Source of the DNA: Ranitomeya imitator
Taxonomy: Eukaryota
Direction: 5' to 3'
Assembly (NCBI RefSeq): GCF_032444005.1
Contig: NC_091282.1
Span: 303,180,001 to 303,244,000, forward strand
Length of the DNA: 64,000 bases
Under the pieces are notes generated by a model that searched no databases, was not told the origin of the DNA, and saw nothing but the letters and a program-made list of their open reading frames with translations. The position numbers and the translations under genes were made by a program. Positions 11,917-63,663 of the stretch are shown piece by piece. Every line of letters starts with the position of its first letter. Within the stretch, counting starts at the first letter, position 1.

Positions 11917-13170
11917 TAGATGGTGGTCCGATTCTAACGCGTAGGGTATTCTAGAATATGTATGTATATAGCAGCCACATAGTATATAGCACAGGCCACG
12001 TAGTATATAGGAGCCATGTTAGCAGACAAATACGACGTGGCCTGTGCTATATACTATATGGCTGCTATATAAAAACATACATACATATTGTAGAATACCT
12101 GATGCGTTAATACAGGCCACGCAATATATAACAGTGGCCACGCAGTATATAACACAGCCCACGCAGTATATAGCAGCCACGCAGTATATGACACAGGCCA
12201 CGCAGTTATAACACTGACCACATAATATATAGCACAGCACACACAGTATATAGCACTGGCCACATAGTATATAGCAGCCACGCGGTATATTACACAGCCC
12301 ACGCAGTATATAACACTGGCCACGTAATATATAGCACAGCACACACAGTATATAACACTTGCCAGGTAGTATATAGCAGCCACATGGTGTATTACACAGC
12401 CCACGCAGTATATAACACTGGCCACATAATATATAACACTGCCCATGCAGTACATAACACAGCCCACATAGCATCTAACGCTGGCCAGGTAGTATATAGC
12501 AGCCACGCGGTATATTGCACAGCCCACGTAGTATATAGCAGTGTGGGCACCATATCCCTGTTAAAAAAAATAATTAAAATAATAAATAGTTATATACTCA
12601 CCTGCCGGGATCCAATCCAGCGAGTCTCTGGCGCAGGAGATGAGCGTGCGGCTGCCGCCATCTTCCGTTCCCAGGATGCATTGCGAAATTACCCACATGA
12701 CTTAGCGGTCTCGCGAGACCGCTAAGTCTTCTGGGTAATTTCGCAATGCATCTATGGGAACAGAAGATGGCGGCAGCCGTGTGCGGCTTGGCGGAATACG
12801 GAGGGTGAGGATAGCAGGTTTTTTGTTTTTTTTTTAAATTATTTTTAACATTACATTATTTTACTATTGATGCTGCATAGGCAGCATCAATAGTAAAAAC
12901 TTGGTCACACAGGGTTAATAGCGGCGGTAACGGAGTGCATTACCCGCGGCATAACCCTGTCCGTTACCGCTAACATTAACCCTGTGTTAGCGGTGACCGG
13001 AGGGGAGTATGCGGGCGCCGGGCACTGACTGCGGGGAGTAGGGAGGGACTAATCGGACTGTGCCCGTCGCTGTTTGGTCGTGGCAGCCATGACAGGCAGC
13101 TGGCGAAACCAATCAGCGACGCGGGATTTCCATTACGGAAGTTGAGGACAGAAAGACGGAAGTACCCCTT
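11916..13170 (-). mobile_element. Non-autonomous Helitron with internal about 24-bp tandem array; 5' end lost in gap
   Basis: Same 3' hairpin plus CTAG end and related 5' region as the short copy. CACGCAGTATATAACACAGCC-like repeats at about 11975-12540. Confidence 0.7.
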
Positions 13171-13326
13171 NNNNNNNNNNNNNNNNNNNNNNNNNNNNNN
13201 NNNNNNNNNNNNNNNNNNNNNNNNNNNNNNNNNNNNNNNNNNNNNNNNNNNNNNNNNNNNNNNNNNNNNNNNNNNNNNNNNNNNNNNNNNNNNNNNNNNN
13301 NNNNNNNNNNNNNNNNNNNNNNNNNN
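13171..13326. other. Assembly gap (N run)
   Basis: 156 N. Confidence 1.
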
Positions 13327-25013: not shown

Positions 25014-25342
25014 GGCTACGTTAACACTAGCGTTGTGCGCCGCTGCGTCGGCGACGCGACGCACAACGCACCGAAAAACGCGTGCAAACGCACGCAAAAA
25101 CGCTGCGTTTTTCGACGCGTGCGTCGTTTTTTGACGAAAATCGGACGCAAGAAAAACGCAACTTGTTGCGTTTTCTTGGTCCGACGCTAGCGTAAAAAAA
25201 GACGCACGTGTCGGAAAACACAACAAGCAAAAACGCATGCGTCCCCCATGTTAAACATAGGGGCGCATGACGCGTGCGTCGCCGCTGCATCGCCCGACGC
25301 TAGCGCGACGCACACTAGCCGAACGCTAGTGTGAACGTAGCC
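25014..25342. mobile_element. Harbinger-type MITE
   Basis: GGCTACGTTAACACTAGCG / CGCTAGTGTGAACGTAGCC termini, TAA and TTA flanks, AAAAACGCA repeats. Confidence 0.8.
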
Positions 25343-26800: not shown

Positions 26801-29800
26801 TTATTCAATCAAACCCAACTTTTTTATTAGTCTCTGATGTTTATCAGCATTCAACGCCTTCGTGAAAATGTCTGCTGTCATTTCTTCAGTAGGACAGTAC
26901 TCTAACTTCAAGACTCCTTGTTCCTGATGATCTCTCAAGAAATGATATTTCACATCAATATGTTTGGTTCTTGGATTGACTCTTTCCATCTGAGCAAGAA
27001 CAAGACATCCTTGATTGTCCTCTTTTAGTTTTGTTGGTGCCAACTGTGGTTGTCCTAATTCTGTCAACAATTGTCTTAACCACAGTACTTCTTGACTCGC
27101 ATGTGCTGCGGCAACATATTCTGCTTCTGTTGAAGATAGTGTCACAATTGACTGTTTCTTACTTGTCCAACTTATTGGTCCACCTGAGAGGAAAAAAATA
27201 TGTCCACTGGTAGATCTTCTGTCAGTTGGATCTCCAGCCCAATCTGCATCAACATATCCTGTTAAAATGCAATCATCGCTTGTGGGTAATTTCAGCTTAA
27301 CATTGCTAGTTCCTTTCAAATAACGTATTACTCTCTTCACGGCATTCCAATCAGCTTTATTTGGTTTTGATACCTTTCTACTCAAGATTCCTACTGCTGC
27401 TGCGATGTCTGGTCTTGTAACGGTTGCTAGATACAGTAGTTTTCCTATTGCTGTTCTGTATTCTTCATTATTTGGTAGCATATTTTGTTCACTGTTCATC
27501 TCTTTGAGATACCGTATATACTCGAGTATAAGCCGAGATTTTCAGCCCATTTTTTTGGGCTGAAAGTCCCCCTCTCGGCTTATACTCGAGTCATATACCC
27601 GGGTGTCAGCAGGGGAGGGGGAGCGGGGGCTGTGTAGTCATACTTACCTGCTCCCAGCGCGGTCCCTGCAGTCCCTGGCTTCTCCGGCGCTGCAGATTCT
27701 TCCTGCACTGAGCGGTCACATGGCACCGCTCATTACAGAAATGAATAGGCAGCTCCACCCCCATAGGGGAGGAGCCGCATATTCATTGCTGTAAATGATT
27801 GGTGCCATGTGACCACTCAATTACAGGAAGAAGCTGCAGCGCCGGAGAAGCCAGGGACTGCAGGGACCGCGCCGCAGCAGGTAAGGGGAGCGCAGCGCTA
27901 TAATTACCTGCTCCTCGCTCCGGCTCCAGCGTCCTCTAGCAATGACGCTCAGGTTAGAGGGCGCTGTGACGTAGTCAGTGCGCGCCCTCTGCTGAGCGTC
28001 AGTGCTGGAGACGGAGCCGCAGAGGAGCAGGTAATTATTGAAAGCGCCGGCGTCCTGAGAAGAGAGGTGAGTATGTGATTTTTTTTTATGGCAGCACCAG
28101 CAGCATTCTAAGGAGCACCTATGGGGCCATAAAGGTGCAGAGCATATAAGGGGCACAGCATTATAAGGAGCACCTATGGGGCCATAAAGGTGCAGAGCAT
28201 ATATGGGGCACAGCATTATAAGGAGCACCTATGGGGCCATAAAGGTGCAGAGCATAAATGGGGCACAGCATTATAAGGAGCACCTATGGGGCCATAAAGG
28301 TGCAGAGCATATATGGGGCACAGCATTATAAGGAGCACCTATGGGGCCATAAAGGTGCAGAGCATATATGGGGCACAGCATTATAAGGAGCACCTATGGG
28401 GCCATAAAGGTGCAGAGCATATATGGGGCACAGCATTATAAGGAGCACCTATGGGGCCATAAAGGTGCAGAGCATATATGGGGCACAGCATTATAAGGAG
28501 CACCTATGGGGCCATAATCAAAGGTGCAGAGCATATATGGCACAGCATTATAAGGAGCATCTATGGGGCCATAATCAAAGGTGCAGAGCATATATGGCAC
28601 AGCATTATAAGGAGCATCTATGGGGCCATAATCAACGGTGCAGAGCATTCTATATAGCACAGTTGTATATGGAGCATCTATGGGGCAATAATGAACGGTA
28701 TGGAGCATCTATTTTTATTTTTGAAATTCACCGGTAAATGCTGCATTTTCTACCCTAGGCTTATACTCGAGTCAATAAGTTTTCCCAGTTCTTTGTGGCA
28801 AAATTAGGGGGGTCGGCTTATACTCGGGTCGGCTTATACTCGAGTATATACGGTAATTAGTTTCCATTGGAGACTTTACTGTTTTTGCATCTTTTAATCC
28901 AAATTTTTCTGTTATGTCTTGAATCATATGATTTTGATTCAGTAGGAAACTTCCATCTTCTCTTTCTACTTGTATTCCTAGATATTGTTTTACATTTCCC
29001 AAGTCTTTGATTTCGAAATGTCGCTTCAGGATTTTTAGAATGTTTTCGTTATCCCTTTCTTGTTCAAAATAAATCAAAATGTCGTCTACATATATGAGTA
29101 TGTAAATCCATCTATTAATCAGCCTTTTTGTGTATAAGCATGGATCAGCTTTGCTTCTTTGAAATTTTTCATTTGTAAGTACTTCCGTGATTTTGTCATT
29201 CCACGCTTTAGCTGCTTGCTTTAAACCATATATGCTTTTCTGTAGTTTACAAACTTTGGATTTCTTTCATCTTTCAATCCTGGAGATTGTTCCATATAAA
29301 TGTCTTCTGTTAAATCTCCATTCAGAAAAGCTGTCTTTACATCCAGATGTCTCAGTTGCATCTGTTTCATTGCTGCAACTGTAAGTAAAGTTCTTATTGT
29401 AGTGTGTTTGACAACTGGAGCAAATGTTTCATCATAGTCTTCTCCATATTTTTGAGAATACCCTTTAGCTACGAGTCTTGCTCGGTATCTTTCAGCTGTG
29501 CCATCTGTTTGGTATTTAACTTTAAAAATCCATTTACATCCTATGGTTTTTCTTCCTTCTGGTAAATCTGTCAGTGTCCATGTATTTGAATCTTGCATGG
29601 ATTTAATTTCTGTTTCTGTTGCTTCTATCCATTTATTAGCTTCTTCTACAGGCAGTTTAGATATTTCTTCCCAAGAAGTAGGCTCATAGATTTTTCTTGT
29701 GCTTGTATTGTATGAGAGACGTTTCGGTGGTTTTCCTTTGTTCTCTCTCATTGAACGTCTTGGTTCTGTGTCTGTTTGTAGTTGTGATTCTTCACTTTCA

Positions 29801-37498: not shown

Positions 37499-40495
37499 CC
37501 GTATAAACTCGAGTATAAGCCGAGATTTTCAGCCCATTTTTGGGGCTCAAAAGTGCCCCTCTCTGCTTATACTCGAGTCATTGTCCCAGGGGGTCGGTGG
37601 GGGAGGGGGAGTGGCAGCTGTCTAATCATACTTACTTGCTCCCGGTGTGTCTCTGCACGTTCCTGCTTCTCTGGTGCCCGCAGCTCTTCCTGTGTTCAGC
37701 AGTCACATGGTACCGCTCATTAAAGTAATGAATATGGACGCATATTCATCACTTTAATGAGCGGTACGATGTGACCGCTGAACACAGGAAGAGCTGTGGG
37801 TTCCGAAGATCACCTGTTAGTGAGAAGCTGCCAGGGACCGCGTCGGGAGCAGGTGAGTATAATGGGGACTGGAGGGTGAGTATTGCGCGATATTCACCTG
37901 TCCCACCGCTGGGTGTCGCTTTGTCTTCTGCGTCCTCTGCCTGTGATGTTCAGGTCAGATGACACGATTAGTGTGCGCGCCGCCCTCTGCCTGAACAGTG
38001 AGTGTGGAGGACGCGGAAGACACAGCGGCGCCCGGCGGTGGAACGTGGACAGGTGAATATCGCAAGTTCCGGGGCAAATTTTTTTATCTTAGCAGCCAAC
38101 TATGGGGCAAATATTTCTATGGAGCATCTTATGGGGCCATAATCAACATATGCAGCATTGTATGGGGCATATTATCTATGGAGCATTTTATGGGGCCATA
38201 TTCAACCTATGCAGCATTGTATGGGGCACATTATCTATGGAGCATCTTATGGGGCCATAATCAACCTATGCAGCATTGTATGGGGCACATTATCTGTGGA
38301 GCATCTTATGGGGCCATAATCAATCTATGCAGCATTGTATAGGGCACATTATTTATGGAGCATCTTATGGGGCCATAATCAACCTATGCAGCATTGTATG
38401 GGGCATATTTTCTATGAAGCATCTTATGGGGCCCATCATAAACTTTATGGATCATTTTATGGGGCATATTTTATTATGGAGCATCTTATGGGGCCATTGT
38501 GAACTGTATGGAGCATTATATGGGGCTCCTGATTCAATATGGTTATTCAAAAACACTTACCGTATATACTCGAGTATAAGCCGACCCGAGTATAAGCCGA
38601 CCCCCCTAATTTTGCCACAAAAAACTGGGAAAACTTATTGACTCGAGTATAAGCCTAGGGTGGAAATGCAGCAACTACCGGTGAATTTCAAAAATAAAAA
38701 TAGATCATTATTTCCCCATAGCTGTGCCATATAGTGCTCTACACCATTCATATTTCCCCATAGCTGTGCCCCATATAGTGCTCTGCACCGTTCACTGTGC
38801 CCCCTAGCTGTGCCATATACAGTGCTCTGCACCGTTCACTGTGCCCCATAGCTGTGCCATATACAGTGCTCTGCACCGTTCACTGTGCCCCATAGCTGTG
38901 CCATATACGGTGCTCTGCACCGTTCATTGTGCCCCCTAGCTGTGCCATATACGGTGCTCTGCACCGTTCACTGTGCCCCCTAGCTGTGCCTTATACGGTG
39001 CTCCGCACCGTTCACTGTGCCCCCTAGCTGTGCCTTATACGGTGCTCCGCACCGTTCACTGTGCCCCCTAGCTGTGCCATATAGTGCTCTGCACCGTTCA
39101 TTGTGCCCCCTAGCTGTGCCTTATACGGTGCTCTGCACCGTTCATTGTGCCCCCTAGCTGTGCCTTATACGGTGCTCTGCACCGTTCACTGTGCCCCCTA
39201 GCTGTGCCTTATACGGTGCTCTGCACCGTTCACTGTGCCCCCTAGCTGTGCCTTATACAGTGCTCTGCACCGTTCACTGTGCCCCCTAGCTGTGCCTTAT
39301 ACGGTGCTCTGCACCGTTCATTGTGCCCCCTAGCTGTGCCTTATACGGTGCTCTGCACCGTTCACTGTGCCCCCTAGCTGTGCCTTATACGGTGCTCTGC
39401 ACCGTTCACTGTGCCCCCTAGCTGTGCCTTATACGGTGCTCTGCACCGTTCACTGTGCCCCCTAGCTGTGCCATATACGGTGCTCTGCACCATTCATTGT
39501 GCCCCCTAGCTGTGCCTTATACGGTGCTCTGCACCGTTCATTGTGCCCCCTAGCTGTGCCTTATACGGTGCTCTGCACCGTTCATTGTGCCCCCTAGCTG
39601 TGCTTTATACGGTGCCCTGCACCGTTCACTGTGCCCCATAGATGCTCCACATTAATCTGTGCTGCCGCTGCTGCTGCTGCAATAAAAAAAAAAAACCACA
39701 TACTCACCTCCCTTGATTGCAGCTCCCGGCGTCTCGTTCCGGCGCCTCCATCTTCCCGGCGTCTCTGCTCTGACTGATCAGGCAGAGGGCGCCGCGCACA
39801 CTATATGCGTCATCGCGCCCTCTGCCCGATCAGTCAGAGAGCGCAGACGCCGGGAAGATGGAGGCGCCGGCCGGGAAGATGGATCGGCGCCCGGCGGCTG
39901 GAACGAGGACAGGTGAATATAACATACTCACCTAGTCCTGGCGATCCTCGCGCTGTCCCCTCCTGTCTTCGGCGCTGCAGCTTCTTTCTCTATCAGCGGT
40001 CACCGGCACCGCTGATTAGAGAAATGAATAAGCGGCTCCGCCCCTATGGGAGGTGGAGCCGCTTATTCATTTCTGTAATGAGCGGTCCCACGTGACCGCT
40101 GAAGAGAGGAAGAAGCTGCAGCGCCGAAGCCCGTGGGACGGCAGGGACAGCGCGAGGATCGCTGGGACTAGGTAAGTATACCTCAGCGCCCTCAGCCCCT
40201 CACCTGCCGACCCCACCGCTACCGTGACTCGAGTATAAGCCGAGGGGGGCACTTTCAGCCCTAAAATTTGGGCTGAAAATCTCGGCTTATACTCGAGTAT
40301 ATACGGTAACCTACTGATGTCTCAATTAATTTTAAATTTATTGGTATCTATTTTTATTCTTGAAATTTACCAGTAGCTGCTACATTTCCCACCCTAGGCT
40401 TATACTCGAGTCATTAAGTTTCCCGTTTTTTTTTTTGTGGCAAAATTAGGGTACTCGGCTTATACTCAGGTCGGCTTATACTCGAGTATATACGG
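37499..40495 (+). mobile_element. Tc2-type element B with 59-bp minisatellite, interrupted by element C
   Basis: CCGTATAAACTCGAG / CTCGAGTATATACGG termini with TA flanks. Confidence 0.85.
38560..40306 (-). mobile_element. Tc2-type element C (inverted, nested in B) with 44-bp minisatellite
   Basis: TA target-site duplication (38558-38559, 40307-40308), same terminal repeats, about 20 copies of CTAGCTGTGCCTTATACGGTGCTCTGCACCGTTCACTGTGCCCC. Confidence 0.88.
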
Positions 40496-46005: not shown

Positions 46006-47310
46006 CTTATATACATTCAACTCAGCTATGCCATCATTTTTAATAGGGAAGGGAATAAGACATTGTAAAACCTCACACGCATATACTATACAGTTGGCTT
46101 CTCCACTGAAATCTGTGGGTTCAGTTGACTTATATCTAATGCTGATGGTCACTTTACCAGAATACCAGTTTGTATTTTGACTCTTTTTTTTTTTTCCAAC
46201 AAACTTTATTGGGTTTTTAATTTTTTAACTGGGGAGGAAAGACTAGGAAGGGGAGGGGGGGATAAAGGGGAGGGGTACGAGTGTGGGGAAAAAGAAACCC
46301 CTATAGAAATAGGGGAACAGACAATCATACGATATTGTAAGAATTTACAAGATAGACGCATTATAAAAATATTACTTAGTAGAGTGATGAGTAAAATATA
46401 TGAGTAATGAATATTTGAAGACCGCATACTCTGACGATATATTGTAGCTGAGTAAACAAAGCCTAAAAGAGGTTTAACTAGTAAATATGATAACATAGGT
46501 AATGTCATAATACACATGTTAATATGGGTGGCACTAAAGCTATCCAGTAGAAAAGAACATCATACGAAGGCCTGTTGTCTCCAGGTCATCTTCAGATGAC
46601 CCTTGGACCTTGTGGGCTTAATGTTCGGTTCAGACACAGGCTGTGACGTGGACTAAACGTAAAGAGGTGAAATGACCCTCAGAGCTCTCAATTTGGTTTG
46701 GGTTTGGACGGAGGGTCAGAAGAAGGGAATCCGGGAGGGCCAATTCCCGCACAGTCAAGAAAGTCCGCCGCCCCATCCGGAGAAGTGAAGGTACGCCACT
46801 TTGCCGCAAAGTAAAATCTCAGACTGGAGAATTGGTGCCATATGTACTGTATTCCAGCCTGATGCAGTCTATAGGTGACGTGTTGGAATGATTTTCGTTT
46901 TTGTAGAGTCTCTTTGAATAGATCCCTGTAGAAGGTTAAGTGACCGTATGGGGAAGAGAGGAATCTTGATTCTCTTGCGATGTCAAGCAAAGAGTCTCTC
47001 AACCAGTTAGGGTATGTTCACACGTTCAGGATTTCCATCCTTTTTTTTTCCTGACTGAAACCGCAGGTCTCTGCAGAAAACGCAGGTGCGTTTTTTGGTG
47101 CGTTTTTGGTGCGTTTTTGGTGCGTTTTTTGGTGCGTTTTTTAGTGCGTTTTTTAGTGCGTTTTTTGATGCAGTTTTGTCTGCAGATTGTCTGTGTTTGA
47201 CAGAAATAAAGTTTACTGCAGTGGGGGGAAGAAAAAAAAAAAAAATGATGTCATTTCCTTGTCCAACCCTTTTCTTCTTCCATCCTCCATTTTGGAACTT
47301 ACACATCAAA

Positions 47311-49623
47311 ATGAGTGGACGTGCAGAGCGTCGTCCAGATGACAGCCCACGGATCCAGCTCCGCACGCCACACCGGATTGCGATCCTGGGGTTGATGCTT
47401 CTAATTTTGAATCGACATGCATGTCAGGTAAGCAGATGTCTGTTTGTTTTATATATTGGGTTATGGGTACTTGTCCACATTCTGGAAACGTTGTATGTTT
47501 GGCGCTGCGTGTGGCCGCAGCGCCAAACATGCAGCGTCCACATGTCAGCATACTGGAGGTGATGTCATGAAATCACGTGTCCACTGTGTGTCATCCGTCA
47601 GCCCTGCGACTCCGGACATGCTGCGCGTCTTTTATGATCACAGCATGTCTGTGTTCCTTGTTGTGAAACTGCGGCTCCGCAATGAATAAAACAGGGCCCT
47701 ATGCGTCGGGTGTGATGATGCTGGATTTGTACAATGAACACATCTGGCATCATTGCGTACTAGAATGGGGTGGGCCTTCCTGAATGTGGACACGTATCCT
47801 TACATAATCGACATTGTTTTCCTTGCATGTTTGATATATTTTTCTAATTGTTGTGTTTACGAAATATTTTTTTATTTTTCTATTTAGCGGCGGCAGAGAA
47901 GACGTGTGCAGAAACGATTGTGGGTGCACCCGCTTGTAGAAGACCGAACTGAGAAGGGGCACTTTCATGTGCTGTACAATGATTTGAGGAGGTAAGTAGA
48001 AATATATAGAATGACTAATTTACCTTTTTTGGCTAGCAATACTTGTGAAGTAACCCTTTTTTGTTGTTCTTTTGCAATTTTCAGATATCCTGAAAAATTT
48101 ATATCGTTTTGTCGGTTACCAATTATTGCCTTTGACAGACTGCTTACCATCCTGGCACTCCATTTAACACTGCAAGACACGGTAATGAGGAAGTCCATCT
48201 CTGCTGAAGAAAGGCTGCTCATCACCTTGCGGTAAGTAACAATTTTTGGGGGGAATGTTGTTAGGTCTGTATTTTACTTGTGTGTGTGTCCAGTATGTGT
48301 GATTAAACCCACCCAGTCCTCTTTTTGGACAGGGGGCACACATACACACACACACGTGAGATACGGGCGAGTGTTGCATGGTAAACCCCGGCTCTGCCGC
48401 CTGCACTCTGGAGCGGAGTGTGCACCCACATACCAATACATGGAGCCGCACGCTCCACAACGGAGTGCATGCAGCAGGTCCGGGGATTACCATGCAACAT
48501 TTGGTCATATCTCGCATGCGTGTGTGCACAAGTCCCATCAGGCCTTTTATTAATGTTTTTTACACCCTTTGTGTTGTGCTGGGTGTTAATGCCAGCATTA
48601 TTGAATGGTGCTGGACGCATATAATAGCGGCCTTAACTTGTGACATGTTGTAATTACCTTTTTGTGTGACATTTCTAATTTTCTTTTTTGTTTCTTTTCA
48701 GATTTTTGGCCACAGGAGAGAGCTATACATCCCTGCACCTCCAATTTAGAGTTGGTAAATCTACCATCTCTAACATTGTGAGGTGTACATGTACCGTCAT
48801 CTGGCAGAAGTTGCAGCCCATGGTGATGCCTTCCCCAACCGAGGAGACTTGGCTGCAGGTTGCAGCAGGCTTTCAGTCTGTGGCCAATTTCCCAAACTGC
48901 ATAGGTGCAGTCGATGGTAAACATGTTCGGGTTCAGCAGCCACCACGATCAGGATCACGCTTCTTTAATTATAAGAAGTATTTTTCAGTGGTCCTGATGG
49001 CGGTGGCTGATGCCCATTACAAATTTGTTGCCATTGACGTTGGTGCCTATGGTAGTACTGGGGATTCTCGGGTGTTGCGAACGTCACAGATTGGGATGCA
49101 AATTCTTCGAGATGGCGGCACGCTCCCAGCCCCACGACCTTTGCCGGGTTCCACACATCCAGTGCCGTTCGTGATGGTATCGGATGAGGCGTTTCCCTTA
49201 ACGACAACCCTGCTGCGCCCATACCCACGAAGGGGACTGGATGCCCGACGGAGGATTTTTAATTATCGGCTGAGTCGTGCACGCAGATATGTGGAATGCA
49301 CCTTTGGGATCATGACTAGTCAGTGGAGGATCTTTCACACTGCCATTCAGTTGGACACAGACACCGTTGATGCTGTGATAAAGGCTTGCTGTGTACTCCA
49401 CAACTATGCTCGTGAATACAACACTGACGTTGATGTGGAGTACCAGCAGCCAGTATTTAATCCAGTTGACAACGGGGGTCTGGGTAGGCCGTCCAACTCT
49501 GGTGTGCGTGTGAGAGAATCCTTCACTGACTACTTTATGAGTCCTGAAGGTGCCGTGCACTGGCAATACTCCTGTGCTGGTGTTGAGCAGCCTGACCAGC
49601 AGAGAAGGATGCATCTACACTGA
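47311..49623 (+). CDS. Harbinger DDE transposase, 4 exons, 429 aa
   Basis: Exons 47311-47427, 47888-47991, 48085-48231, 48702-49623; all GT-AG with consistent phases, total 1290 nt. Motifs LWVHP, ISAEERLLITLRFLATG, GAVDGKHV, GDSRV, SDEAFPL, RRYVECTFG. Exon 1 is the least certain. Confidence 0.9.
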
Positions 49624-50132
49624 CCCCCCCAGAAATGTTGCCGACATCGCTGATAACAGTTTTGACAACATCCCGAAGAATGAGAAACGCCAGCAACCAA
49701 CACAAAAGTTTGAAAAAAAAATTTTTTGTTTCATGTTACCAAAAAAACTGTGTTAAATAATTGATTGTAATATCAATAAAAAATCTATTTGGGTGTAATT
49801 ATTTTTTTTTTGTTTTTTTTGGCTACAAAAATTTTGGTGTTTTATGAAAATAATAGCAGTATGACGTATACAATTGTTAACACATCAACACATAAACCAC
49901 TAATTGATAGCCCATAAACCCAGGATAGCGGCCTTGACCGCATTGTAATAAAGAAGAGAATAGTATGTTTGAAATATAATATATTTAAAAGAACACAAAT
50001 TCTTTGCAATATTTACAAAAGATTTTTCAATTAGAAAAAACAAAAAAAAAGCCCCTTTCAAAGCCAACTGGCAACTGGAGCTAAAAAACAAACCAAAAAA
50101 AACTCGGTGCCACTGAAAATTTTTGCCCATGT

Positions 50133-53100
50133 TCAATTCAGAAAAGTATATTCTGGAGAATAGAGGAAATTTGATCCCTCTGATTGATATGGTGCTCCCC
50201 CCATATGCTGCGAACTTCCTCTATCTCCAGAAGTAACTTGGCTGTGGGCCAAATACTGGGGTCTGGTAGCTTGTGTTTCCGGTGTTCGGTGTCGGGGCCT
50301 GAAAAGTCCCAACACCCCCATCAGAACTTCATTGTATGGAGATATCGGAGCAGGGTCCTCCAGAGCAGTGAGGGACATCTGGACCATGGACATGAAAAGA
50401 GATTGTCTATCCGGTGGCAGGGAGCGTGTTTTTCTTGCCACAGTTAGTGCGAAGGAGTCGCAGTGGTCATCAGAACTAGATTTTTTTAATAGATCTAACG
50501 TGTCGCAAGCGATTTGGACAGTTTGGTCATCTTGGTTTTTCTTTGTTTTTTTTTTTTTTTTCTCTGCTGCCACCGGATAGACAGCTCTCTTCTCCACTCT
50601 CACAGCTTCTGCGGAATCAGATGCTTCAGCAGCTGCTGAACTAGATGTTGATGCAGCAGCTGCTGAAGTGGATGCTGATTCAGCAGAAGCTGTGGGAGTG
50701 GAGGTAGAGATGGTCCCTCCCACTCCAGAGGAACTGCCTGCTCCATCCTCTTTGTCGCTGTCCTCCAAATCAGCTACCGACATGTTTCCTTCCGTCCTGT
50801 TGGAGAAAAAAAAAACATCAATTTTTCGCACAACATATTATATTTAAATAATCATGTGGAGTGGATTTTAACTTACTTTCTCAATGTCCTACTGGACACA
50901 AGAAACTGCAGCTCTTCGCTAAATGGAAATTTACTTTTGCTCGGCGAAGAGCCACTCTTAGAACATTCGTTCAGGAACTTCGTGAAACGGTCTCTGATTG
51001 AGCGCCACCGTTTCCTCACATCGTTATCTACCAAAAAAAGGTTACAAAATACAACAACATTTTTTGTGAGATCTAAACAAATTATATTTTTAATATACTC
51101 AAGGTTTACTAAATAAATTTAATTAAAATTACCAATTTGCTGCTGTGTACTCCCTGGATACTTGTCCCAATCTGGGATAAGGTCTCGTACAATTTTGGTC
51201 CAGGCTAGTTCCCGGAAATATTTATCCTTGTAGGATTCATCGGCTGGGTCCCACAAGGCCGGATAATCCCGAACCTACAATAAATACAATAGTGTCATCT
51301 CATAATCTATAGCGCGACCAAGTAATGTTACACAATTGCTGGAAATATTTCAAAGTAACCCCTAATAACTGAACACAAGCACAAACTGAAAACACAAACA
51401 CCAATAAAAACGCTTGTGTGCAGTTGTTTTACCACTAGCTCTGTCGCCGTCAATCCTGAGTGGTTCGTGCGACAATCAACAACATTCATTAAAAAACACA
51501 CTATAAAGTGAAATAGTTAGGGTAGGGTTAGGGCTCATAACCCTAAGCACTCTACCCCAAAAGGGATCCTAAACATAACACAACCACAAAAGGGATCCTA
51601 ACCCTACAGGGATCCTAACCCTAACCCTACAGGGATCCTAACCNNNNNNNNNNNNNNNNNNNNNNNNNNNNNNNNNNNNNNNNNNNNNNNNNNNNNNNNN
51701 NNNNNNNNNNNNNNNNNNNNNNNNNNNNNNNNNNNNNNNNNNNNNNNNNNNNNNNNNNNNNNNNNNNNNNNNNNNNNNNNNNCTAACCCTACAGGGATCC
51801 TAACCCTAACCCTAACCCTACAGGGATCCTAACCCTAACCCTACAGGGATCCTAACCCTAACCCTAAAGGGATCCTAACCCTAACCCTAACCCTACAGGG
51901 ATCCTAACCCTAACCCTAAAGGGATCCTAACCCTAACCCTAAAGGGATCCTAACCCTAACCCTAACCCTACAGGGATCCTAACCCTAACCCTAAAGGGAT
52001 CCTAACCCTAACCCTAACCCTACAGGGATCCTAACCCTAACCCTAAAGGGATCCTAACCCTAACCCTACAGGGATCCTAACCCTAACCCTAAAGGGATCC
52101 TAACCCTAACCCTACAGGGATACTAACCCTAACCCTACAGGGATCCTAACCCTAACCCTAACCCTACAGGGATCCTAACCCTAACCCTACAGGGATCCTA
52201 ACCCTAACCCTACAGGGATCCTAACCCTAACCCTAAAGGGATCCTAACCCTACAGGGATCCTAACCCTAACGGGATCCTAACCCTAACCCTACAGGGATC
52301 CTAACCCTAACCCTACAGGGATCCTAACCCTAACCCTACAGGGATCCTAACCCTACCCCTAAAGCTATTGTAAGGTGGCATTAAGCACTGTTAGTAATGG
52401 CGAGGCGTCAATAAGACGCCGATCAATTATTAATCCTAATAAGGTTTACTATAATATATGTGGACCCCCCTAAAAAAAAAAAACGTGTTGGGGTCCCCCT
52501 ATATTTTTAGGCCAGAAAGGCTAAGCAGACAGCTGTGGGCCAATATTTGACGCCCGGGAAGGGGTTAAAATACCCATGGCTGTTCCCAGGCTATGAATAT
52601 AAGCCCACGGCTGTCTGCGTAGCCTTTCTGGCACTAAAATATAGGGGGCCCCGAAAAAAAAACGTGTTGGGGTCCCCCTATATTTTTAGGCCAGAAAGGC
52701 TACGCAGACAGCCGTGGGCTTATATTCATAGCCTAGGAAAGGGGCCATGGATATTTGCCCCCCCCTGGCTACAAATATAAGCCCGCAGCCGCCCCGGAAA
52801 AGGCGCATCAAAAAGATGCGCCAATTCCGGCACTTAGCCCCTCTCTTCCCACTCCCGTGTAGCGGTGGGATATGGGGTAATGAGGGGTTAATGCCACCTT
52901 GCTATTGTAAGGTGGCATTAAGCCCGGTTAATAATGGAGAGGCGTCAATGAGACGCCTATCCATTATTAAGCCAATGAAAGGGTTAAAAAAAAAAAACAC
53001 AAACACTAGAAAAAATATTTTAATGAAATAAAGACACACACTTTTTGACAATTCTTTTATTGCACGCTCAATCCATCCTGAAGACCCTCGACCTGAAAAA

Positions 53101-53841
53101 AAGGCAAAACAAAAAAACAAATTCATACTCCCTGGCCCTGTCCGCAGAAATCCATCGAGGGTCCCACGAAGATCTTCCATGGAGAACAGACACATCCAGA
53201 GATGTGTCTGCTCTCCACGGCTGCAGCAACACACTGACAGGAGCCATAGTTCCTGTCGGTGTGTCACTGCGCATGCGCGAGCGAGTTTACCGGCGGTCAT
53301 TGACCCCGGTACTCTCGCTTAACGGCAGTGCTGCGTGGGAAAGTTCAACGCAGCTGTACTGCCGTTAACCGAGACGCCGGCGCCATTGAGCTCCGGGACA
53401 GTACGCGATACACTGCTAGGAGCTTCGCTCCTGGCAGTGTATCACCGGAGAGCAGGAGATCGGCGTGGGACACTCGGTTATGGATTCTGCGGACAGGGAG
53501 TATGGATTTGCTTTATTATTTTGGGATTTTTTCATTGAGGATCGAGGGCTTCGCCTACAAGTGTGGTGTATGGTGAGTATATACTCTATGTTATGTGTTG
53601 TATGTACTGTACTGTGTGTCATGTTTGTGTATTGTGTGTTTGTGTTTGGTGTGAACTTTAGTATTGTGCTAAGTCGCCGGACACAGGGACAACTCTCCCA
53701 TCCTAAATACCGGATGGGAGTAGTAGTCCGATACGGCGACTTAGCACAATAGAGGCATATCGTCGCATGGGGACGGACACACAGACTTACCAAATCAATC
53801 AGACGCCCGACATCGATCCCCATGCGACGGTATGCCTCCAT
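50133..53841 (-). CDS. Harbinger Myb/SANT-like (MADF) DNA-binding protein, 4 exons, 335 aa
   Basis: Exons 53841-53791, 51274-51133, 51027-50877, 50796-50133; all GT-AG, total 1008 nt. Splices to MEAYRRMGIDVGRLIDLVRDYPALWDPADESYKDKYFRELAWTKI...DVRKRWRSIRDRF. Confidence 0.88.
51580..52363. repeat. Telomere-like array (CCCTAA)1-3 punctuated by CCCTA(C/A)AGGGATCCTAA
   Basis: Read directly; contains an N gap at 51644-51782, so the true length is unknown. Confidence 0.95.
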
Positions 53842-54607
53842 AGTGACAGTCTCTTCGTGATACAGTCGGGACCACACACGCCGCCCACGGACTTCCGCCC
53901 ACGCACTTCCGCCCGCTTCCCCGAACTTCCTGCAGCAGCGGTTCTGCACATCAAACCGCAGTAAAACACGCAGATATATTTTTGATCTGCGTGTTTTACT
54001 GCGATTTTGACCTCACAATGGAGGTCTATGGGTGCAGAACCGCTGCGGTTCAGGAAGAAGAATTGACATGCTCCTTCTTTTTTCCGGGAGCTATTCAGCG
54101 CGGCTTTTTTTTTACAATTTCCGGACCATGTGCACAGTGTGTCCTGTTTTCCATAGGGTACAGTGTACTGTACCCTGCATGGAAAACAGCTGCGGAACCG
54201 CAGCGGCAAAACCGCCGCGGTTCCGCGGTAAAAAACGCACTGTGTGAACATGGCCTTAGGATAAAATGAGATAATAACGTCTGCGGCTAAATTGTATTTT
54301 GACTCTTTAACCCTGGTAAGCTATGATTACATTAAAGTGGCTATCAATGTAAAGATTTGGCTACAATATCACAAGCATTACAATATTTTTACTCAGAAAG
54401 CTCATCAGGATTAGGGCATTCGGGAAAAAAAGTTTCCTATAATATGAAGAATATACAGTAGACCTGTAGTATAGGATTTAAAGGATAGGAGCTGTCATGC
54501 TTGAATTTATAGGTTGAATGGAGAAAGCTTTAATAACAAGGTTATAATTCTACAAGAGTAAGACATTATGGTCCTGTAATCTTTTATATCATCTCTTTAT
54601 GACACAG

Positions 54608-54710
54608 GTTTTATGGAAAGTCTGAAAGATCTGTTGTCTGATGAAGACTGCACAGTTCGACAGAAGACTACTGAGATTTTCTACATAATGGCTGGTCATA
54701 ATATTGGAAG
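54608..54710 (+). CDS. RSPH14: RSPH14 second coding exon (103 nt)
   Basis: Acceptor ACACAG| and donor GGAAG|GTTGGT. Phase joins the first exon: (G)FMESLKDLLSDEDCTVRQKTTEIFYIMAGHNIG(R), similar to human [34 protein letters not shown]. Too short for the ORF track. Confidence 0.92.
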
Positions 54711-54869
54711 GTTGGTGAGCTCTGATTGGAATTAAAATGAAGCTATCAGCTATTTCATGCAAGCCCAAACTATGAGCAGCAAGAAATCCAGATAGACACC
54801 CTCATTACAGAGATTTATATTATATTCTGACATGCTGCCGCATTGATCCTCATAGAAAACCTAGCTTAA

Positions 54870-56378: not shown

Positions 56379-59300
56379 TCACTTGTCGTCATCTTCATCA
56401 TCATCTTCTTCTTTGTTTCTATTCATAATCTGGAAAAGAAAAACAAGCTTTCCTGCTTTATTGTGTCCCAACTGATTTCTCAATTTAGAATGAATGAGTC
56501 CAAAGGAAGAGAATATTCTTTCAACACCTGCAGAAGAAGCTACTGCTGTTAAAAGTGAAATCATTACTTGAACAGTCTCTAAATCCAAGCGCTTAAGTGA
56601 CTTCCACCAGTTTACTGGTGTGACCTTCCTTAAAATATCTTCAGCAAACATATATTTCTTGAATGGTTCCCCCTTAGCTCTGAAGTTTATTATAGTTGGC
56701 ATTAAAGATGGATGATTGCTGGATACCCATGTCATAACTAACTCCTCTTCCTCAGCACTTAGGATTTGACCCTGATATTGGATATTGACAATATTTGCCA
56801 AAAAATGAGCTGGAGTCAGTGCTTGTCCCATTCGTTTGTTTACTGCTTGTAATTTAATTCTGTCCATGTGTAGTTCTGTTTTTAAGTGTTCACTCAGTTC
56901 CTTCCAAATTTCAACAGCATCCGCAATAAAACAGCTATTTTTCTGTATTTTGTTTAAAGCTTGAGAGATGGGTTTCAGGAAGCTCAGCATATGTTCAACA
57001 TTTCTCTTAAGCCCAATGTTGAGGATTTTGGCCGTGACAGTGCCATCTATTTTATCTCGATTTTCTTCACAAAGTGTCATCAGAATAGGCCAGTTTTTGA
57101 TATACCGTATATACTCGAGTATAAGCCGAGATTTTCAGCCCATTTTTTGGGGCTGAAAGTCCCCCTCTCGGCTTATACTCGAGTCATATACCCGGGGGTC
57201 GGCAGGGGAGGGGCAGCGGGGGCTGTGTAGTTATACTTACCTGCTGCGGCGCGGTCCCTGCAGTCCCTGGCTTCCCCGGCGCTGCAGATTCTTCCTGTAC
57301 TGAGCGGTTACATGGCACCGCTCATTACAGAAATGAATAGGCGGCTCCACCTCCCATAGGGGAGGAGCCGCATATTCATTGCTGTAAATGATCGGTAACT
57401 GTGACCGCTCAATTACAGGAAGAAGCTGCAGCGCCGGGGAAGCAGGGACTGCAGGGACCGCGCCGCAGCAGGTGAGTATACGGGGATCGCAGCGCTGCGC
57501 TATATTTACCTGCTCCTCGCTCCGGTGCGGCTCCGTCTGCAGCGTCCTCTAGCTGTGACGCTCAGGTTAGAGGGCGCAGTGACGTAGTCAGTGCGCGCCC
57601 TCTGCTGAGCGTCAGTGCTGGAGACGGAGCCGCACGAGGAGCAGGTAAATATTGAAAGTGCCGGCGTCCTGAGCAAGAGAGGTGAGTATGTGATTTTTTT
57701 TTATTTATTGCAGCACCAGCAACATTCTATATGGCACAGCTTTATATGGAGCATCTATGGGGCCATAATGAACGGTGCACAGCATTCTATATGGGGCACA
57801 GCATTATATATGGAGCACCTATGGGGCCATAATCAACGGTGCAGAGCATTCTATATGGGGCACAGCATTATATATGGAGCACCTATGGGGCCATAATCAA
57901 CGGTGCAGAGCATTCTATATGGGGCACAGCTTTATAAGGAGCATCTATGGGGCCATAATCAATGGTGCAGAGCATTCTATATGGGGCACAGCTTTATAAG
58001 GAGCATCTATGGGGCCATAATCAACGGTGCAGAGCATTCTATATGGGGCACAGCTTTATAAGGAGCATCTATGGGGCCATAATCAGCGGTGCAGAGCATT
58101 CTATATGGGGCACAGCATTATATATGGAGCACCTATGGGGCCATAATCAACGGTGCAAAGCATTCTATATGGGGCACAGCATTATATATGGAGCACCTAT
58201 GGGGCCATAATCAACGGTGCAGAGCATTCTATATGGGGCACAGCTTTATAAGGAGCATCTATGGGGCCATAATCAACGGTGCAGAGCATTCTATATGGGG
58301 CACAGCATTATATATGGAGCACCTATGGGGCCATAAACAACGGTGCAGAGCATTCTATATGGGGCACAGCATTATATATGGAGCACCTATGGGGCCATAA
58401 TCAACGGTGCAGAGCATTATATATGGGGCACAGCTTTATAAGGAGCATCTATGGGGCCATAATCAACGGTGCAGAGCATTCTATATGGGGCACAGCTTTA
58501 TAAGGAGCATCTATGGGGCCATAATCAACGGTGCAGAGCAATATATATGGGGCACAGCTTTATAAGGAGCATCTATGGGGCCATAATCAACGGTGCAGAG
58601 CAATATATATATATGGCACAGCTTTCTATGGAGCATCTATGGGGCCATAATGAAAGGTATAGAGCATTCCATATGGCACAGCTTTATGTGGAGCATCTAT
58701 GGGGCCATAATGAACGGTGCAGAGCATTCTATATAGCACAGTTGTATATGGAGCATCTATGGGGCAATAATGAACGGTATGGAGCATCTATTTTTATTTT
58801 TGAAATTTACCAGTAGCTGTTGCATTTCCTACCCTAGGCTTATACTCGAGTCAATAAGTTTTCCCAGTTTTTTGTGGCAAAATTAGGGGGGTCGGCTTAT
58901 ACTCGGGTTGGCTTATACTCAAGTATATACGGTACTGCTCAAAACAGTCCACCACAGAGTTCCATCTAACATCTTGTGGGAGCGTTAGCTTGGTTCCACC
59001 CATCCTTCTCAGAGCTGCTGCAGCAAAATGATTATTACGGAAGTATTTAGCAATTTCAACAACATTAGCCTTTATTTCTGGAACACTTAAGTCTTTGGCT
59101 AAGAGGTGCAGCAAATGAGCACTGCAACCATATGTTATTAGCAGCTTTGTATTCCCTCCCTGCTCTTCTAAATCTCTTCTCATCTTGGATACGTTTGCAG
59201 CATTGTCAGTGACCAAACTGCGTACTAGACATTTGAATTTTTGTTCACATGTCGTTATAGCTTTTACTGCCACTTCTTGTAAGTATTCTGCTGTGTGTGC

Positions 59301-60259
59301 ATTTCCTGACGTATCAGTTGTTTGTGCAAGGAAGACTTTACCTTCTTCTGTTGTTATACAAGCACATACAATAGGATCATTGTGGACATTACTCCACCCA
59401 TCAATACTTAGGTTAACAATTTTACCCTCCAGAGCTGTTGCACATTGCTCCATTTCTCTGTCATACACTTGATCCAGCAGTTTCCCTGCAACATCAGCTC
59501 TGCTGGGTGGACTGTATCCTGGTCTCAGTGACTGAACCATATTAATGAAATGTGGGTTCTCAGTCAGACGGAAAGAAGAGTTCGTTGCATAAATAAACTG
59601 GGCAATTTTTTCATCAATCAACTCTTTTTCTAAGCTGCTAGTTCTTATCACAAACCTATCTATGGTGGTTCCAGGAGGTAAAGGTTTTTTCTTCCTTTTG
59701 GGTGATGGAGATATGTGGCTGTGGGTGTCTGATGATGATGCTGCTGCTAATGAAGCACTATCCTGGATGGATAACTCTGAAACTGTAGAACAGGATGATG
59801 GTGATCTTGGAGGTGGATAGTTTCCAGAATCTGTGAATTCCCCTAAACAAAAAAAGTCAATGCTGTTATTTTATTGTTTATACAATTTCTGCTTATTGTA
59901 CACAACAAATCACTGCCCCTGCCCCAAAAGGAATATTTGTTTTTCTTCATAACTGTACCAAATGACAGTAACATGCAGTAATAATAAGAAATATAATTTT
60001 TCTCACACATGACAGTTCAGTCTTTAGAAATAGGATTCAATAAAAATGTTTACCAACCTGAAGATCCTGCCTGTTCAGAAGTGTTTCTTTGGTCATCTTC
60101 ATCACCGCACTTCTCATGATGTTGCCTCATTCGCGCCACCAGGCCTTGCATCTCTTTGTTGCATCGTTTGCATTTTGCACGCATGCCTGCCTTACCGATA
60201 GGCGAAGGAGCTTCATTAAAATATTCCCAAACTGGGTCTCTTTTACGGCCTGCTGCCAT
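56379..60259 (-). pseudogene. hAT transposase (BED finger plus DDE), 611 aa once the MITE is removed
   Basis: Exon 60259-60058, then exon 59842-56379 interrupted at QY^IKNW. Motifs W..F...C..C...H...C, IDGW, VTDNAAN, CSAH, RWNS, SAGVERIFS. Confidence 0.9.
57105..58932 (+). mobile_element. Tc2-type element D with 62-64 bp minisatellite
   Basis: Same terminal repeats as A-C, TA target-site duplication, inserted in the hAT coding exon. Confidence 0.88.
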
Positions 60260-62289: not shown

Positions 62290-63540
62290 ACGTAAGTTTT
62301 ATCCCTGATCCCTGCCCAATCCCCGTTCATCCACCCCAATCCCCGTTCATCCACCCCAATCCCCGTTCATCCACCCCAATCCCCCCTTCCCCCTCTTTTT
62401 ACCCCCTCCACCCCCATTTGTGCCGCCTCCGTGCGCACATTTTGTAGCCGCCGAGCGTTGATTGGTGACGCAGTTCACCGATCAACGCTCGCGCTCGCTT
62501 TTTTTCCCTCGCCCCCGTTGCGCCAACTCCGTACACACATTCCGCAGCCGCCAAAGTTTGATAAGTGACGCAGTTCACTTATCAGAGTTTGTGCCTGCCG
62601 TTTTCCTTTTTTTTTTTTTTCACCCCCCTTTTGCGCCACCTGACTACAACCGTACGTTTTGATCACTGATCCCTGCCCAATCCCCACTTCCACCCCCATC
62701 TCCCTTCCCCCTCTTTTTACCCCCCTTTGCACCTCCTTCCGTGCGCCCATTTAACAGCCGCCGAACGTTGATTGGTGACGTAGTTCACCGATCAACGCTC
62801 GCGCTCGCTTTTTTTGCCTCACCCCCGTTGCGCCAACTCCGTACACACATTCCGCAGCCGCCAAAGTTTGATAAGTGACGCAGTCCACTTATCAGAGTTT
62901 GTGCCTGCCGTTTTCCTTTTTTTTTTTTCACCCCCCTTTTGCGCCACCTGACTACAACCGTACGTTTTGATCACTGATCCCTGCCCAATCCCCACTTCCA
63001 CCCCCATCTCCCTTCCCCCTCTTTTTACCCCCCTTTGCACCTCCTTCCGTGCGCCCATTTAACAGCCGCCGAACGTTGATTGGTGACGCAGTTCACCGAT
63101 CAACGCTCGCGCTCGCTTTTTTTCCCTCACCCCCGTTGCGCCAACTCCGTACACACATTCCGCAGCCGCCAAAGTTTGATAAGTGACGCAGTTCACTTAT
63201 CAGAGTTTGTGCCTGCCGTTTTCCTTTTTTTTTTTTTTCACCCCCCTTTTGCGCCACCTGACTACAACCGTACGTTTTGATCACTGATCCCTGCCCAATC
63301 CCCACTTCCACCCCCATCTCCCTTCCCCCTCTTTTTACCCCCCTTTGCACCTCCTTCCGTGCGCCCATTTAACAGCCGCCGAGCGTTGATTGGTGACGCA
63401 GTTCACCGATCAACTCTCGCGCTCGCTTTTTTCCCTTCAGCCTTTTTGCGCAACCTCCGTACACACATCCCGCAGCCGCCAAACTTTGATAAGTGACGCA
63501 GTTCTCTTATCAGAGTTTGTGCCTGCCTTTTTTTTTTTTT
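62290..63540 (+). repeat. 309-bp tandem repeat, about 4 copies
   Basis: Unit recurs at about 62740, 63049 and 63358; near-identical ORFs 62475..62750 and 63093..63368 are 618 bp apart. Confidence 0.9.
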
Positions 63541-63663
63541 TTACAGGTTTTTCTTCTCCTTTTAGCATTTTCTTTTCAGATAAGTTTGCACAAATCACTA
63601 TCCCCCCACACATACACATACAGTTATCAATAAAGTGCACCCAATCACCATATTCACACAAAA

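Follow-up and report, generated by a model that had tools for sequence, protein, structure and literature searches.

A telomere-hexamer minisatellite in an intron of a two-gene PIF/Harbinger transposon of the poison frog Ranitomeya imitator

Tandem arrays in the interior of DNA transposons are a well-documented phenomenon. DTC84, a miniature inverted-repeat transposable element (MITE) of a clam, has a palindrome at each unit junction of its internal array, and this palindrome has been proposed as a hotspot of length change (PMC3879986); Tetris of Drosophila virilis is another case (PMC4079207). Mobile elements have also been discussed as a source of telomeric repeats inside chromosomes. Excerpts of reviews on interstitial telomeric sequences (ITS) name transposition of mobile elements as a possible origin and cite as evidence the frequent presence of mobile elements and satellite DNA beside ITS (PMC6410037, PMC9693754), and many interstitial telomeric signals of anurans are described, in excerpts of this literature, as unexplained by chromosome fusions. 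Our literature searches yielded reviews and analogous cases, but no Harbinger or other autonomous DNA transposon whose own gene contains an array of telomere hexamers, and the genome paper of the dyeing poison frog does not mention Harbinger. Here we analyzed a window of 64,000 nucleotides from Ranitomeya imitator (RefSeq assembly GCF_032444005.1, contig NC_091282.1, positions 303,180,001 to 303,244,000, forward strand), in which a PIF/Harbinger transposon holds a telomere-like array in the first intron of its MADF (Myb/SANT-like) gene, the ORF1 of the element. We consider it fairly probable that this array is a passenger minisatellite of an intact, multi-copy, autonomous element and has been spread by that transposon. 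The locus provides a concrete vehicle, a two-gene Harbinger that is intact and apparently still mobile and that has a telomere-hexamer minisatellite in one of its introns. The proposal that transposons carry telomeric repeats can thereby be tested in two chromosome-scale Ranitomeya assemblies.

The array and the element that carries it

Telomere hexamers are arranged head to tail on the plus strand between positions 51539 and 52363 of the window, in an array split by a gap of 139 N. Its parts are the following:

51517-51533, plus strand: inverted telomeric patch TTAGGGTAGGGTTAGGG at the array edge
51539-51643, plus strand: array left of the gap, degenerate edge units and then 17- and 23-bp units (direct-repeat family D3)
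51644-51782: assembly gap of 139 N inside the array, with the same unit in the same orientation on both flanks
51783-52363, plus strand: right-hand part of the array, made up of 24 units with lengths of 17, 23 or 29 bp (Tandem Repeats Finder and unit splitting)

The units follow the formula GGATCC-TAA-(CCCTAA)1-3-CCCTA[C/A]AG, which gives lengths of 17, 23 or 29 bp, well within the head-to-tail units of about 10-100 bp that define a minisatellite or variable-number tandem repeat. The usual unit of about 23 bp consists of 2-4 telomeric hexamers and an 11-bp spacer, in which the palindromes GGATCC and CCCTA[C/A]AGGG are found. Tandem Repeats Finder reported a 23-bp period (23.7 copies, score 751) together with a higher-order period of 75 bp (7.4 copies, score 822) that we graded as weak. 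Cut at GGATCC, the 581-bp part of the array to the right of the gap gave 14 intact units of 23 bp, five of 29 bp and two of 17 bp; two further 23-bp units remained joined as a 46-bp piece because the site between them reads GGATAC. When the whole window was scanned for CCCTAACCCTAA with at most one mismatch, we obtained 51 matches against 0.3 expected, every one of them in 51522-52362. In the rest of the window CCCTAA and TTAGGG occur 17 and 10 times, which is chance level (about 15 expected). Perfect telomeric runs of 12-22 nt cover 66% of this 581-bp right-hand part, the maximum being 22 nt, and there is no perfect threefold TTAGGG in the array. In all, the array is a compound minisatellite derived from telomeric repeats, far beyond what chance would produce.

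A preliminary description of this DNA had reported at least 0.7 kb of (CCCTAA)n with a short TTAGGG patch in the opposite orientation at 51516. The array itself is confirmed, but its repeats are compound units of 17, 23 and 29 bp and not plain (CCCTAA)n; the sequenced letters amount to about 95 + 581 bp, the remainder of the 0.7 kb being the gap. The inverted patch is indeed present, at 51517-51533. The units beside it are degenerate copies, as would be expected where an array has its old edge, and they point to an array of some age. We also considered a nested element of its own, bounded by inverted ends of telomere-like sequence, and rejected it because the patch scores 32 against the far array end and 30 against any internal unit, which makes the far end no better a partner.

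The array belongs to a complete PIF/Harbinger element of 7.2 kb with two genes and lies between its inverted ends. The element occupies 47010-54255 and is built as follows:

47007-47009: left target-site duplication TTA, adjoining the left inverted end
47010-47023, plus strand: left terminal inverted repeat GGGTATGTTCACAC, 14 bp, found by pattern search
47085-47177, plus strand: tandem repeat GGTGCGTTTTTT of 12 bp in the subterminal region, about 8 copies (Tandem Repeats Finder and motif scan)
47245-49623, plus strand: Harbinger transposase gene, open, with 4 exons (47245-47427, ~47885-47993, ~48085-48232 and 48701-49623)
50133-53841, minus strand: MADF (Myb/SANT-like, ORF1) gene with 4 exons (53841-53791, 51274-51133, 51027-50877 and 50796-50133)
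51275-53790, minus strand: MADF intron 1, 2516 bp including the 139 N, with exon 1 located through the N-termini of homologues
54242-54255, minus strand: right terminal inverted repeat GGCCATGTTCACAC, 14 bp, matching the left end at 12 of 14 positions
54256-54258: right target-site duplication TTA, directly after the right inverted end

The pattern of the inverted ends occurs four times in the window against 0.13 expected, and the two exact occurrences flank both genes. The motif scan placed a single further copy of GGTGCGTTTTTT at the right end (54239, minus strand). Using the 451-aa transposase P0034 as a tblastn query, we found 98.7-100% identity in the first and last exons, with all four exons open; Pfam DDE_Tnp_4 (PF13359) matches the window exon at 7e-32 and P0034 at 1.8e-31. 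The two genes are oriented tail to tail, and the transposase span of 2379 bp is that of the annotated copies. Near-identical copies (at least 90% identity) form a 33-member MADF cluster and a 43-member transposase cluster across R. imitator and R. variabilis, and at several loci the transposase/MADF pair recurs at constant spacing. The locus thus has every mark of an autonomous PIF/Harbinger element: a DDE_Tnp_4 gene, a MADF gene, short inverted ends with TTA, and multiple near-identical copies. Self-BLAST found no second copy of the element or of the array within the window, and Rfam returned no known RNA family in 46500-54800. Exact-pattern scans of metagenome contigs for the compound unit gave no match, which says little because such contigs should hardly contain frog DNA. 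Related transposases occur in Phyllobates terribilis (88% identical) and Anomaloglossus baeobatrachus (84%).

Elsewhere in the window, at 25014-25342, there is a 329-bp Tourist-like MITE whose ends GGCTACGTTAACAC/GGCTACGTTCACAC resemble those of the Harbinger. It is flanked by TAA and TTA and is rich in GCGTTTTT-type motifs. It may be a non-autonomous relative mobilised by the present or a related transposase.

All junctions of the MADF gene are GT-AG, and the spliced product is identical to the R. imitator protein P0015 at 335 of 335 residues, with a Pfam MADF match of 4.8e-16. Since exon 1 lies at 53841-53791 and exon 2 begins at 51274, the array falls within intron 1. An alternative exon 1 at 51489-51433, which would have left the array upstream of the gene, was ruled out: homologues start with MEAYRRMGIDVGRLIDL, encoded at 53841-53791 on the minus strand. 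The preliminary description had placed the array inside the Harbinger and inside the first intron of its MADF gene, and both placements hold. Because it lies between the inverted ends and in this intron, the array would travel with the element; because it is intronic and spliced out, it is harmless to the protein and would ride as a passenger. With both open reading frames intact and a MADF protein identical to that of another copy, the copy in the window is itself young, as judged from its sequence.

Two further segments of intron 1 are repetitive:

52364-52986: complex duplicated and palindromic block adjoining the array (direct repeats D6 and D8, inverted repeats I3 and I5, self-BLAST)
53094-53534: MITE-like segment with 44-nt inverted repeats at its ends (inverted repeat I8, self-BLAST)

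The first contains a 73-bp direct repeat, 89% identical and 537 bp apart, that encloses nested inverted repeats, and it may be a composite MITE. Palindromic structure is also found in other parts of the element. In MADF exon 4 a Ser/Ala-rich coding stretch (50592-50703) forms an inverted repeat with 47-nt arms that are 79% complementary, and there are comparable palindromes at 48345-48526, in an intron of the transposase gene, and at 52532-52789, 53290-53396 and 53662-53751, in MADF intron 1. At the start of the MADF pre-mRNA (53735-53855, minus strand) a long hairpin is predicted at -64 kcal/mol (z = -8.1, with 0 of 200 shuffles as stable). Its arms are 53845-53817, covering the ATG and most of exon 1, and the intronic 53773-53745, and the 5' splice site is near the tip. 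If it folds as modelled, this hairpin could control the splicing or translation of ORF1, or feed a small-RNA pathway.

Copies of the element and the history of the array

We compared the other copies of the element through their annotated gene ranges only, after adjusting the spans to the first methionine. The MADF coding spans are:

P0001 copy: 3384 bp
P0013, encoded at three places: 4411, 4281 and 3709 bp
P0015 copy: 4535 bp
P0026 copy: 4124 bp
335-aa MADF next to P0034: 3713 bp
P0003 copy: 4582 bp
window copy: 3709 bp

The third P0013 place has exactly the span of the window copy and may be the window's own locus. Eight near-identical copies thus have eight different MADF coding spans, from 3384 to 4582 bp, and most of them exceed that of the window. 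The three P0013 places encode identical 329-aa proteins and yet differ by 130-700 bp. In contrast, the stop-to-stop spacer in the copies varies only between 502 and 510 bp, and the transposase span, where listed, between 2350 and 2381 bp (2379-2381 bp except in the P0003 copy). The exons of the MADF gene and its introns 2-3 account for only 1193 bp, and therefore the 1.2-kb range of spans lies in intron 1. Variation of this kind is more easily explained by a variable-number repeat than by one or two insertions that a copy has or lacks. It indirectly suggests a segment of variable length in this intron of the family, and an array that changes in length would fit. Provided that the other copies have kept the remaining 1668 bp of intron 1, their arrays would measure about 0.5-1.7 kb, and no near-identical copy is short enough to be free of an array.

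Several points weigh against this reading. The presence of the array in other copies is read from gene lengths only, and other insertions into intron 1 could yield equal length variation. Shorter spans exist, 3120 bp in a subfamily of 87% identity and 3144 bp in an R. variabilis copy; these would accommodate an array of no more than about 260-280 bp, or none if the introns differ. Finally, the window's own array holds the gap of 139 N.

One alternative is that the window copy alone gained or expanded the array after its insertion, the other length differences being due to nested MITEs or other minisatellites. The repeat-like blocks at 52364-52986 and 53094-53534 are in keeping with an intron that accumulates insertions, minisatellites are common in this genome, and the comparison with other copies is one of gene lengths. 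We nevertheless regard a locus-specific event as rather unlikely. The eight near-identical copies differ in span and are mostly longer than the window copy, the differences among copies encoding the same 329-aa protein point to a fast-changing repeat common to the copies, and the degenerate edge units suggest an old array whereas the copy that holds it appears young.

The gap itself raises the alternative that 51644-51782 fuses two molecules, either two copies of the family or one copy and some other telomere-like array. Assemblers resolve this type of repeat poorly, the length of the gap is an estimate only, and continuity across it cannot be proven from sequence; a join of two copies of the same family would look identical. 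An artefact is nonetheless highly unlikely in our view. The same unit in the same orientation is found on both flanks; the left flank leads to exons 2-4 of a single gene and the right flank to its exon 1, with order and strand as they should be; and the joined exons give a product identical to the annotated P0015. Both inverted ends and TTA duplications agree, and the total MADF span falls inside the range of the other copies. Moreover, the right-hand 581 bp of the array run without a break into the intron on their side and are inside the element, and a join of two same-family copies would not overturn the main conclusion. Since the gap is within the array and within the intron, it poses no issue for the reading frame.

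For the passenger minisatellite that we favor, the following history can be proposed. We conjecture that the array most likely goes back to a master copy whose intron had either received a short stretch of telomeric sequence or acquired a small microsatellite; a repair-associated telomeric insertion and the birth of a microsatellite would be the candidate origins, with duplication afterwards. Slippage or unequal exchange would then have enlarged the array by tandem duplication of the compound unit. The degenerate edge units and the 75-bp higher-order period fit such a history of insertion followed by tandem growth. Cut-and-paste transposition would carry the telomere-like block to every new site, so that each new copy of the element probably plants one inside a chromosome, and the length of the array would drift independently in each copy. 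This is little in practical terms: arrays of about 0.5-1.7 kb in tens of copies would not alone account for the large blocks visible by fluorescence in situ hybridization (FISH).

The window overall is unusually dense in tandem repeats and minisatellites. Three minisatellite arrays (28101-28691, 38101-38526 and 57723-58778) have related units of 55-64 bp with common TATGGGGCC/GCAGAGCAT motifs. The last of them lies between hAT-like open reading frames, 56379-57080 with a hAT dimerisation domain and 58851-59651 with DUF659, and from this position it may be another transposon-borne array. Long arrays are also found at 38714-39641 (21 copies of a 44-bp unit) and 62410-63542 (3.7 copies of a 310-bp unit), and a second assembly gap, 13171-13326 (156 N), has a 21-bp/102-bp tandem array (12108-12537) some 600 bp away.

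RNA and protein binding

The preliminary description had also proposed that the MADF pre-mRNA is UUAGGG-rich and able to form G-quadruplexes. The first part is borne out, because the gene is on the minus strand while the array reads CCCTAA on the plus strand. The second part is not supported by the motif search or the folding. The sense RNA of the array contains no canonical G-quadruplex motif (four tracts of at least three G) with loops of up to 7 nt, and none with loops of up to 12 nt; 13 motifs appear only when loops of up to 15 nt are allowed, and these need a 14-nt loop across the spacer. A G-quadruplex-aware minimum-energy fold of the array RNA contained no G-quadruplex, and the sense RNA is less stable than shuffled controls (z = +3.0).

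The consensus for binding of TRF-type proteins is YTAGGGTTR. This motif occurs 36 times in the array and once in the rest of the window, and on this basis binding of shelterin to the array is conceivable. The protein encoded by the MADF gene itself gave no match to the telomere-type Myb DNA-binding model of Pfam at E up to 1, MADF being the sole match, and a PDB sequence search found no relative at E up to 1. Harbinger3_DR is the one Harbinger tested experimentally, and its Myb-like protein recognises a short (9-bp) subterminal motif (PMC9710019). By analogy, the subterminal GGTGCGTTTTTT repeats, which are unrelated to TTAGGG, are the likely binding sites of the frog MADF protein.

These results bear on the proposal that the array is kept as a functional module, for putative recruitment of TRF1/TRF2 or heterochromatin, for a TERRA-like UUAGGG intronic RNA, or for MADF binding that tunes ORF1. 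TERRA is the UUAGGG-repeat RNA transcribed from the C-rich telomeric strand, and the C-rich strand of the array is likewise the template, which gives the intronic RNA the same polarity. The concentration of YTAGGGTTR sites also speaks for such a module, and an array in all copies, if true, would be compatible with selection. The lack of a telomere-type Myb match and of a PDB relative, the non-telomeric character of the expected ORF1 targets, the absence of canonical G-quadruplex motifs and the weak fold of the sense RNA speak against it. So does the strong length variation among copies, which suggests no constraint on size, and passenger arrays in transposons are common. We therefore hold a functional module to be very unlikely, and the available checks on putative roles in MADF-protein binding or G-quadruplex formation do not favor one. 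Also very unlikely is a selected cassette, in which putative transposon-borne TRF-type sites and an intronic RNA of TERRA polarity could draw shelterin or heterochromatin factors and thereby damp ORF1 or protect the element. Were this true, the element would as a side effect create new interstitial telomeric sites, fragile or fusion-prone points in poison-frog chromosomes.

Comparison with known systems

In its general organization the frog element resembles known autonomous PIF/Harbinger transposons such as zebrafish Harbinger3_DR and rice Ping/Pong. It shares with them a DDE_Tnp_4 gene and a Myb/SANT/MADF ORF1, as well as short inverted ends, a 3-bp TWA duplication and repeated short subterminal motifs (PMC9710019). 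It differs from them in the 2.5-kb first intron of ORF1, which holds the telomere-hexamer minisatellite along with other repeats.

With interstitial telomeric sequences of vertebrates, including those of anurans, the array shares telomeric hexamers at a non-terminal site. Short ITS are near-uninterrupted TTAGGG tandems; the array is not made of pure hexamers, since its longest perfect run is 22 nt and an 11-bp non-telomeric spacer interrupts every unit. At about 0.8 kb it is also smaller than the large FISH-visible blocks known from frogs; heterochromatic ITS are very large and lie in pericentromeric heterochromatin. As for TERRA, the MADF pre-mRNA would likewise contain the G-rich strand, but the frog repeats lie in an intron, are broken up after every 2-4 hexamers and are not subtelomeric.

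The DTC84/pearl-type MITEs of bivalves and the Tetris foldback element resemble the frog element in having an internal array with a junction palindrome, and their apparently variable copy number would be a further likeness (PMC3879986, PMC4079207); the GGATCC and CCCTA[C/A]AGGG at the frog junctions can be compared with the junction palindrome of DTC84. In these systems too the transposon is both vehicle and seed for tandem repeats. Their carriers, however, are non-autonomous or foldback elements with non-telomeric units, whereas the frog carrier is an intact autonomous element with an intronic array of telomeric hexamers.

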